A stretch of 61,289 nucleotides of DNA, the filler included, from Dugesia japonica (Eukaryota): assembly GCA_001938525.1 (NCBI GenBank). It is 6 parts of 6 records of this genome, joined end to end, with 100 filler letters (N's around TTAATTAATTAA, not from the genome) between each part and the next. Parts side by side here need not be neighbours in the genome. Positions count along the whole stretch, not along the records: positions 1 to 9,758 come from MQRL01582998.1; 5 more parts are not named here. One strand, given 5' to 3'. The translations under genes were made by a program, and so were the position numbers. Position 1 is the first letter of the stretch, and the number at the start of each line of letters is the position of its first letter. The notes under the pieces were generated by a model. It did no database searches, was not told the DNA's origin, and was given only the letters and a program-made list of their open reading frames with translations. Of this stretch, positions 8,296 to 8,868 are shown in pieces.

Positions 8296-8868
8296 ATGGC
8301 GTCAAATGAGTAATTGTTACTGAGTATTTTATTGTTATTTATTATGAATTTCAGAAATGATAATGTCGAGGCTGCAATCTTGAGCAGTAGAATAAACCAA
8401 TTGAAAGAAATGGTAGAATTGTTATTGAAATATCCTCAATTATCGAATACCATCTTTGTGAATCCACCAACATGCAATATCTTGCTGTATGGTCCATCTG
8501 GTACTGATAAAGAATCGATTGCAAAAGCCGTGGCAAACGAAACTGGAAGCTTCTTCCGGTCGATAAGTGGTCCAGCAATAATGTCGAAACTCCCTGATGA
8601 GTCCCAATTGGATCTTAGAAACGCATTCGAGTGGGCAAAGAACAAATCTTCTGCGATAATATTCATAGATGAACTCGAGATGATCGCTCCGAATGAAACT
8701 CGTGGCTCAGTAGAGCGTCGAATTGCTTTCCAACTATTAACATTGCTGGATCGGTTGAAACAATGGAGTAATCGGGTAATCGTGATGGCCGCAACGGAAG
8801 GGCCAAACAGTATTGATCGGGATCTACGTAAACATAACAGATTCAACAAGGAGGTTACATATGAATAA
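8296..8868 (+). CDS. Miniature p97/VCP/CDC48-derived protein, 175 aa (exon 1 8296-8309, 45-nt intron, exon 2 8355-8868); D1 AAA alpha/beta subdomain only, with degenerate ATPase motifs
   Basis: Spliced [109 protein letters not shown] is colinear with p97 D1. GTAATT donor and TTTCAG acceptor are present, with AATAAA about 60 nt after the stop. Confidence 0.8.

Follow-up and report, generated by a model that had tools for sequence, protein, structure and literature searches.

The window analysed here, a stretch of 61,289 nucleotides (nt), filler included, from Dugesia japonica (assembly GCA_001938525.1), holds at positions 8296-8868 a miniature derivative of the ATPase p97, hereafter mini-p97, in which the extreme N terminus of p97 is joined directly to part of its first AAA domain, D1. 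This gene is a real, spliced and transcribed member of a young, lineage-specific family that occupies at least four loci of the genome, the window copy included. On the evidence of the DNA alignments the source of the family is p97-B, the second of two full-length p97 genes in the same genome. The copies may encode, now or until very recently, a fast-evolving, non-catalytic D1 pseudo-ATPase of about 175 residues, a reading that includes their translation and to which slightly less than an even chance is given. The case for it comes mainly from the preservation of the reading frame across copies, and it is weighed below against the view that they are expressed relics without function.

Gene model, product and transcripts

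The gene consists of two exons separated by a short intron, with the following features.

8296-8309, plus strand: exon 1, the ATG (8296-8298) and 11 further bases, giving M A S N and two bases of the codon for E
8310-8354, plus strand: intron of 45 nt, GT..AG with acceptor tttcag, inherited from intron 1 of p97-B
8355-8868, plus strand: the whole of exon 2 with its TAA stop codon (8866-8868), read from the sequence
8355-8393, plus strand: tip part of exon 2, from the start of p97-B exon 2 (comparison with contig C228121 and with the D1 of p97-B)
8394-8868, plus strand: D1 alpha/beta subdomain, 157 codons and the TAA at 8866-8868 (Pfam AAA and alignment with p97 D1 in the PDB)
8928-8933, plus strand: AATAAA, a candidate poly(A) signal read from the sequence, the motif being common in AT-rich DNA

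The spliced open reading frame (ORF) comprises 175 codons, and its start codon is flanked by A at -3 and G at +4. Tip and D1 meet at about 8390-8399 in the window copy, where 17 N-terminal residues of p97 are joined straight to the alpha/beta subdomain. In protein searches, which used the exon-2 piece only (window 8356-8865, 170 amino acids), residues 42-167 matched Pfam AAA (PF00004) with E=9.9e-29 over profile positions 1-127 of 131, and the piece aligned at ~1e-65 with p97/Cdc48 D1 (residues 212-367) in many solved structures. It follows from these two spans that helix alpha-0 and the entire alpha/beta core are covered, and the ORF terminates directly past the last strand of the subdomain. 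Amino-acid identity of this D1 with that of the genome's own p97 is 62%. No family match to the lid (AAA_lid) was obtained in the Pfam search of the exon-2 protein, the p97 alignment stopping at residue 367, and the N domain (CDC48_N, PF02359, and CDC48_2, PF02933) is missing from mini-p97, in which just the 17 tip residues precede D1. Matches to CDC48_N sit on other contigs, the window holding just a decayed relic at 2229-2603. A tblastn search with p97 D1-D2 gave one D1-like segment in the window and no D2, and splicing to downstream lid or D2 exons was seen in none of the contigs examined.

The nucleotide site is degenerate. Walker A reads GPSGTDKE in the window copy (8491-8514) versus GPPGTGKT in p97, and the P-loop pattern GxxxxGK[ST] is unmet, the G before K having become D and the T/S after K having become E; in other mini copies Walker A carries GTYK or GSSG. 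Sensor-1 of the window copy has changed from N to E (8797-8799) and reads AATEG, the first Arg finger is K (8830-8832) and is G in the other mini copies, the second R is retained (8839-8841), and the pore loop is KLPDES. Walker B, IIFIDE (8656-8673), is retained in every mini copy. Mini-p97 lacks most of the traits by which a working AAA+ ATPase, or a true p97, is recognised, yet it descends clearly from p97. An earlier note, made on the window from the sequence alone, had described the two-exon model (ATG, 45-nt GT-AG intron, 175 codons, stop and AATAAA), the fusion of tip to D1 with the N domain skipped and lid and D2 absent, the motif changes listed above with Walker B kept, the degenerate P-loop, and a decayed neighbouring copy. 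It proved accurate on each of these points: the model reads as described in the sequence, Pfam, the PDB alignment and the comparison with C228121 agree on the fusion, the motif changes are present in alignments to p97, and the decayed copy lies at 2229-2603.

The window or part of it occurs in 20 listed public runs, from one organism and nine studies, none of which is labelled RNA on record. Contigs of two of these runs, X1 and X2, which belong to different studies, were placed on 8100-9000 at a likeness of at least 95%. The 8309|8355 junction predicted in the earlier note is present in contigs of both, in both directions: one contig per run matches 8190-8309 without differences and then carries the first bases of 8355 onward, and in X1 a further contig begins with the final bases of exon 1 and passes into 8355-8469, which it matches at every base. 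Contig depth inside the 45-nt intron is 3 and 0. As the genome assembly (854 Mb in 648,594 contigs) nowhere contains the joined 8309|8355 sequence, these contigs derive from spliced transcripts, which confirms the predicted junction. The summed depth of the family in exon 2 reaches 577 in X1, where contigs of the type of another copy, C85205, have a depth of 84 versus about 20 for window-specific parts, other members thus being more abundant than the window copy.

Upstream of 8190 the same contigs continue for 28 and 219 bases, with an exact 30-nt match at 2572-2601, which implies a splice 2603|8192 and the use in RNA of the AG acceptor at 8190-8191. The splicing described in the earlier note is borne out, and the RNA of the window copy is mainly the 3' part of a chimeric transcript joined at 2603|8192. 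Two further features of the window enter into that transcript.

2229-2603, plus strand: decayed second copy of the p97-B 5' end, with an 85% DNA match to 8289-8400 and a donor GT at 2604; its parts are exon 1 (2229-2242), an intron of 45 nt (2243-2287), exon 2 in shortened form and a decayed CDC48_N exon interrupted by stops
2604-8191, plus strand: GT-AG intron of the chimeric transcript, 5,588 nt, its junction deduced from the X1 and X2 RNA contigs and the end sequences; it contains minus-strand, retrotransposon-like ORF remnants and an N gap

Low-depth contigs of X1 and X2 at 8113-8227 carry upstream sequence of the type of a further copy, C74012, together with an unspliced intron of that type; either the upstream region of that copy is transcribed too, or the runs contain some genomic DNA or pre-mRNA.

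Descent from p97-B and the family of copies

The genome holds two full-length p97 genes, p97-A and p97-B, with which mini-p97 and the region in front of it were compared.

p97-A, contig C385410: canonical full-length p97 gene, its best named matches being from flatworms and molluscs at 87-91%
p97-B, 5' end on C228121 and N-D1-D2 part on C353580: second full-length p97 gene
8100-8295, plus strand: upstream region (promoter/5' untranslated region homology) inherited from p97-B, aligning with C228121, window 2030-2230, C134699, C93027 and C74012

The p97-B 5' end on C228121 matches mini-p97 at 84% DNA identity across exon 1, intron 1 and ~36 nt at the start of exon 2. The frame of p97-B on that contig reads MASNK / NDDLETAILRSKAKPNRLIVED and then continues into the N domain; after ...AILSSR, where p97-B enters the N domain, mini-p97 jumps straight to D1. 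The D1 DNA of mini-p97 is 76% identical to p97-B and 66% to p97-A. At the other end, the ORF stops where it does because one nucleotide has been deleted from the stretch that encodes EVDIGIPD in p97-B, the truncation itself thus being a frameshift with respect to p97-B; homology fades a few bases later, and none with the p97 lid was found in the 3' flank past the EVDIGIPD codons. Homology with p97-B extends to the ~200 nt before the mini-p97 ATG, which match its own upstream region. Because intron 1 is retained, the duplication took place at the DNA level and not by retroposition. By these alignments p97-B is the source of the mini family, and the tip is genuinely derived from p97. An alternative, that 8192-8250 preserves a remnant of the beginning of p97-B exon 4 and so points to a permuted tandem duplication, was rejected, 8100-8295 aligning with the p97-B upstream region and three other 5' copies.

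Rather than the single micro-paralogue first described, mini-p97 is one member of a family. Four more contigs carry the same fusion of tip to D1 and the same 3' end.

C391930: 92% DNA identity to the window copy
C85205: 90% DNA identity to the window copy
C74012: 5' half only
C11611: 3' half only

The exon-1 ATG and the intron are kept in the window copy and in C74012. In C391930 and C85205 the exon-1 ATG is gone and the intron is damaged; a 2-nt deletion in the tip brings an internal ATG of exon 2 in frame with D1, and the ORFs are six codons longer (TAA to GAA). Since the tip is read in another frame in these two copies, it is not conserved as protein, and the idea that the N-terminal tip is a kept part of the product falls.

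One further contig, C97784 (positions 1-1161), is intermediate between p97-B and the mini copies. It still holds the second half of the N domain, interrupted by a stop directly before a conserved Met, and from that Met an open frame of 207 amino acids runs through D1. Its D1 has lost Walker B (IIIFTNN) and the pore loop. In common with the mini copies it has the SGTDK P-loop, +3, -6 (PKREKT to PNET) and +3 indels, and the 3' end; all six of its indels relative to p97-B are multiples of three. In a DNA tree of D1 the mini clade has 100% bootstrap, and the mini copies together with C97784 are sister to p97-B, also with 100%. Given that C97784 has both SGTDK and the truncation yet keeps a portion of the N domain, P-loop death and truncation predate the loss of that domain. 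A DNA search with C97784 returned no further relatives. Its use as a 'dead' control is doubtful, its D1 frame being open and its indels all in-frame, and it could be a second, independent route to a dead D1 without N domain. C97784 begins with low-complexity sequence that resembles the repeat array at 8974-9758 of the window.

The order of events deduced from these comparisons is as follows. A partial duplicate of p97-B lost everything past the last alpha/beta strand of D1, after which its P-loop died (GPSGTDK); a genomic deletion then took out the N domain, so that the beginning of exon 2 was fused to D1, and the resulting unit was copied to at least four loci.

Duplication of p97 has been unusually frequent in this genome. 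C555331 (1-2164) is a rearranged duplicate with two tandem CDC48_N-like segments (804-1037 and 1469-1702) and the start of D1, at 79% protein identity to p97-B. C547957, at 74-76% protein identity to p97-B and with only a +3 indel, may be a live or recently dead paralogue. C299669, C392891 and C444113 are p97-like copies with stops and frameshifts; their derivation from p97-B was rejected, the tree grouping them with p97-A, and they were kept as a baseline for indel lengths. The p97-A contig carries, at 2990-3953 of C385410, reverse-transcriptase/RNase H-like retroelement ORFs in the long intron that separates the exons of the N domain from the D1-D2 exon.

Two features of the sequence surrounding mini-p97 complete the description of this part of the window.

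4064-5716, minus strand: ORFs of 110-144 amino acids inside the chimeric-transcript intron, with an N gap near 5450-5650; their motifs resemble those of the RNase H/integrase part of a Ty3/gypsy-type retrotransposon, and a Pfam search of these ORFs gave no match
8974-9758, to the contig end: dense, AT-rich array of tandem and inverted repeats with periods of 22-37, 56 and 83 and the motif TTTTTCTAG and its complement

Frame preservation and competing explanations

If the family is translated, selection would keep the frame and the hydrophobic core while the surface changes fast. The alternative that has to be set beside this reading, itself quite possible and rated as somewhat the less probable of the two, is that the copies are expressed but functionless relics, that is young, unprocessed p97-B pseudogenes whose frames are still open for lack of time and which are transcribed through the retained parental upstream region or through their position downstream of the decayed copy. 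What speaks for a translated product and against mere relics is chiefly the frame. No stop or frameshift occurs in the 157-codon D1 core of any of five sequences, for which neutral simulation gave P=0.036; about 106 substitutions separate the mini copies from p97-B by branch lengths, and with 4.5% of mutations making stops about 5 stops were expected and 0 were seen. Among the mini copies indels are absent from the core, whereas they are numerous in the intron, the tip and the flanks. In the clade of mini copies and C97784, 7/7 D1 indels are multiples of three; those in decayed p97 copies are mostly out-of-frame (-11, +1, -29, -2, +1). Changed positions relative to p97 are fewer among hydrophobic residues (17/58) than among others (45/83; p=0.0036), and the three central strands ILLYG, IIFIDE and VIVMAAT are unchanged in every mini copy; in C97784 changed positions show no difference between hydrophobic and other residues. 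The lost ATG of C391930 and C85205 is, moreover, compensated by the new in-frame ATG.

The rates of substitution weigh in the opposite direction, against a translated pseudo-ATPase and for relics. Between the window copy and C391930 the Nei-Gojobori method counts 27.2 non-synonymous versus 1.8 synonymous changes, synonymous changes being few among the mini copies in general. In codon models the ratio of non-synonymous to synonymous rates (dN/dS, or omega) of the five mini copies is 2.10 (versus 1: twice the log-likelihood difference, 2dlnL, 4.5, p about 0.03), and by branch it is 0.56-0.72 on the mini stem, not different from 1 (2dlnL 88 versus the p97 background), 1.3 on the C97784 branch, likewise not different from 1, and 2.1-2.2 in the crown (p 0.06-0.08 versus 1), so that omega is significantly off 1 on no branch of the clade; p97-A and p97-B have an omega of 0.004. 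Changes are spread evenly over codon positions (variable sites 22:22:13), divergence in the core (K 0.05-0.09) is about equal to that in the 3' flank (0.04-0.12), and the mutation spectrum is biased from GC to AT, as in neutral decay. Taken alone, the substitutions look neutral to mildly diversifying. Of the two signs that the earlier note had coupled as unfavourable, the one, a dN/dS near 1, was found (about 1-2 among copies), and the other, disabling mutations, is absent.

Several observations also lower the weight of the frame argument itself. The window ORF drew attention by being intact, a form of ascertainment bias, and the window copy alone would be stop-free by chance with P=0.46; its intactness is thus unremarkable by itself, and the argument rests on the other copies and their common history. 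At least two of the in-frame indels represent slippage in 3-nt repeats, so that the p-value is overstated. Within the crown hydrophobic sparing is only a trend (p about 0.1), crown tests for such sparing or for conservative replacement giving p 0.10-0.31, and the overlap of stem-changed with crown-variable sites is not significant (odds ratio 2.0, p=0.11). The catalytic residues are not merely lost: the first Arg finger (K/G) and the P-loop (D/Y, P/S) vary between copies, for which reason neither seems selected. The start codon has been lost in two copies and the stop codon moved in two. Several other p97 fragments in the same genome are plainly dead, and no protein of the mini type (at least 80% identical) was found in the public protein collection, in which the best matches are ordinary p97 fragments at 53-64%.

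The RNA data add to these reservations. Depth stays level between 8193 and exon 2, and the contig over 8190-8309 runs upstream into the decayed exon (2572-2603), from which it follows that the main isoform of the window copy is the chimeric read-through RNA with a long, stop-laden leader. In that leader an upstream ATG at 8204 opens an out-of-frame upstream ORF that overlaps the mini-p97 start; to judge from the sequence, such a leader with an overlapping upstream ORF would be poor for translation. The transcript 3' end, for which the earlier note had proposed to look alongside the junction, did not appear: no contig or read was found on 8813-9000 at a likeness of at least 95%, which leaves the last 18 codons, the stop and the poly(A) site of the window copy without RNA support. 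The window-specific T at 8764 was not seen in X1. Two raw-read RNA runs, X23 and X24, gave zero reads on 8100-9000, which counts as no test.

Two further explanations differ from both of these views. The family might act as RNA, as a regulatory RNA or small-RNA source directed at p97-B through the common 5' region and the D1 sequence, with the frame kept open only because translation shields the RNA from nonsense-mediated decay. A spliced and collectively abundant RNA, a frame that is open without visible amino-acid constraint and a 5' region 84% identical to p97-B would all suit such a role; an overall identity to p97-B of ~76% is low for an antisense or small-RNA effect, and the sparing of hydrophobic positions points to a protein fold and not to RNA. 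This explanation is rated improbable. Far less probable still is an artefact of assembly, in which mis-joined p97 fragments would mimic the N-domain deletion or the truncation. The assembly is indeed very fragmented, with its 648,594 contigs, and several of the family contigs are 500-750 bp long and end at the same points. The fusion and the 3' end recur, however, on four independent contigs, and public runs of other studies include contigs that match 8190-8309, and 8355-8469 across the fusion, at every base. The fusion is accordingly no misassembly, a danger that the earlier note had named.

As for what a translated mini-p97 might do, it would dock through the D1 ring interface onto a p97 protomer. 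Its P-loop would be unable to hold nucleotide and it would offer no lid to receive the next protomer, and once docked it would cap or weaken p97 hexamers or titrate partners that bind D1. In complex prediction, mini-p97 against the D1 of p97-A gave a median ipSAE (interaction prediction score from aligned errors) of 0.38 versus 0.00 for the best of three controls, in a range, at or below 0.60, where a score is likelier to be wrong than right; of the pairs used for calibration, 51 of the 78 solved and 2 of the 108 mismatched ones attained the mark. The mini chain had a pLDDT (predicted local distance difference test) of 76-81, and contacts agreed in at least 77% of cases. The model thus lends weak support to docking on p97-A D1. 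Weighing against it, p97 rings have been solved, and the score may for that reason reflect the model's memory of p97 hexamers. The suggestion of the earlier note that mini-p97 caps or poisons p97 hexamers gains this much from the prediction and otherwise stays conjecture; capping as such is considered unlikely. A wider proposal, judged equally doubtful, is that the mini copies and C97784 would be rapidly diversifying dead D1 'cap' subunits that join p97 hexamers or dock on them, or decoys for factors that target D1, evolving under genetic conflict, with the N domain removed twice independently, by deletion in the mini copies and by the stop before the conserved Met in C97784. If this were true, the cap or decoy family would be a lineage-specific regulator of an essential and otherwise almost invariant machine.

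Comparison with known systems

p97/VCP is among the most conserved and essential eukaryotic proteins. No description of a natural truncated p97 paralogue acting on p97 was found in the literature searches made or in public protein sets. A translated mini-p97 would amount to a natural experiment in building a dominant modulator from one subdomain of an AAA+ ring, and to a pseudoenzyme that arose from a partial duplicate. An untranslated family would be a well-documented illustration of how long open frames and spliced transcripts can persist in partial duplicates and mislead gene prediction.

Compared with the D1 of p97/VCP/Cdc48 (TER94), mini-p97 is a direct duplicate descendant of p97-B, with homologous exon 1, intron 1 and D1 core. 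It differs in the absence of the N domain, the D1 lid, D2 and the C-terminal tail, in its altered P-loop, sensor-1 and first Arg finger, and in being about 100-500 times less constrained (omega 0.6-2 versus 0.004). The N-D1 fragment of p97 (1E32, among the PDB matches of the exon-2 protein) is likewise a piece of p97 without D2 that uses the D1 ring interface. This fragment assembles into hexamers through D1, and its use of the D1 interface without D2 is the basis for the idea that mini-p97 docks on p97. Unlike mini-p97, it has an N domain, a lid and an intact nucleotide site; as mini-p97 has none of the three, it is unlikely to form rings on its own.

The nearest known way of working to that proposed here, by analogy, would be that of LAP1 and LULL1. 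These nucleotide-free, AAA+-like partners of Torsin dock onto a genuine AAA+ ATPase at its ring interface and modulate it; they are ancient, conserved and membrane-anchored activators that donate an Arg finger. Mini-p97, in contrast, is young and soluble and evolves fast, and at the position of the first finger, which is not conserved, it has K or G. As a kind of object it comes closest to unprocessed pseudogenes and young chimeric genes formed from partial duplicates. Mini-p97 resembles these in being a partial DNA-level duplicate with a retained intron, an internal deletion, a truncation by frameshift, an omega near 1 and read-through chimeric transcription. It differs from them in that its core carries no stop or frameshift in any copy, its indels are in-frame and its hydrophobic core is spared.

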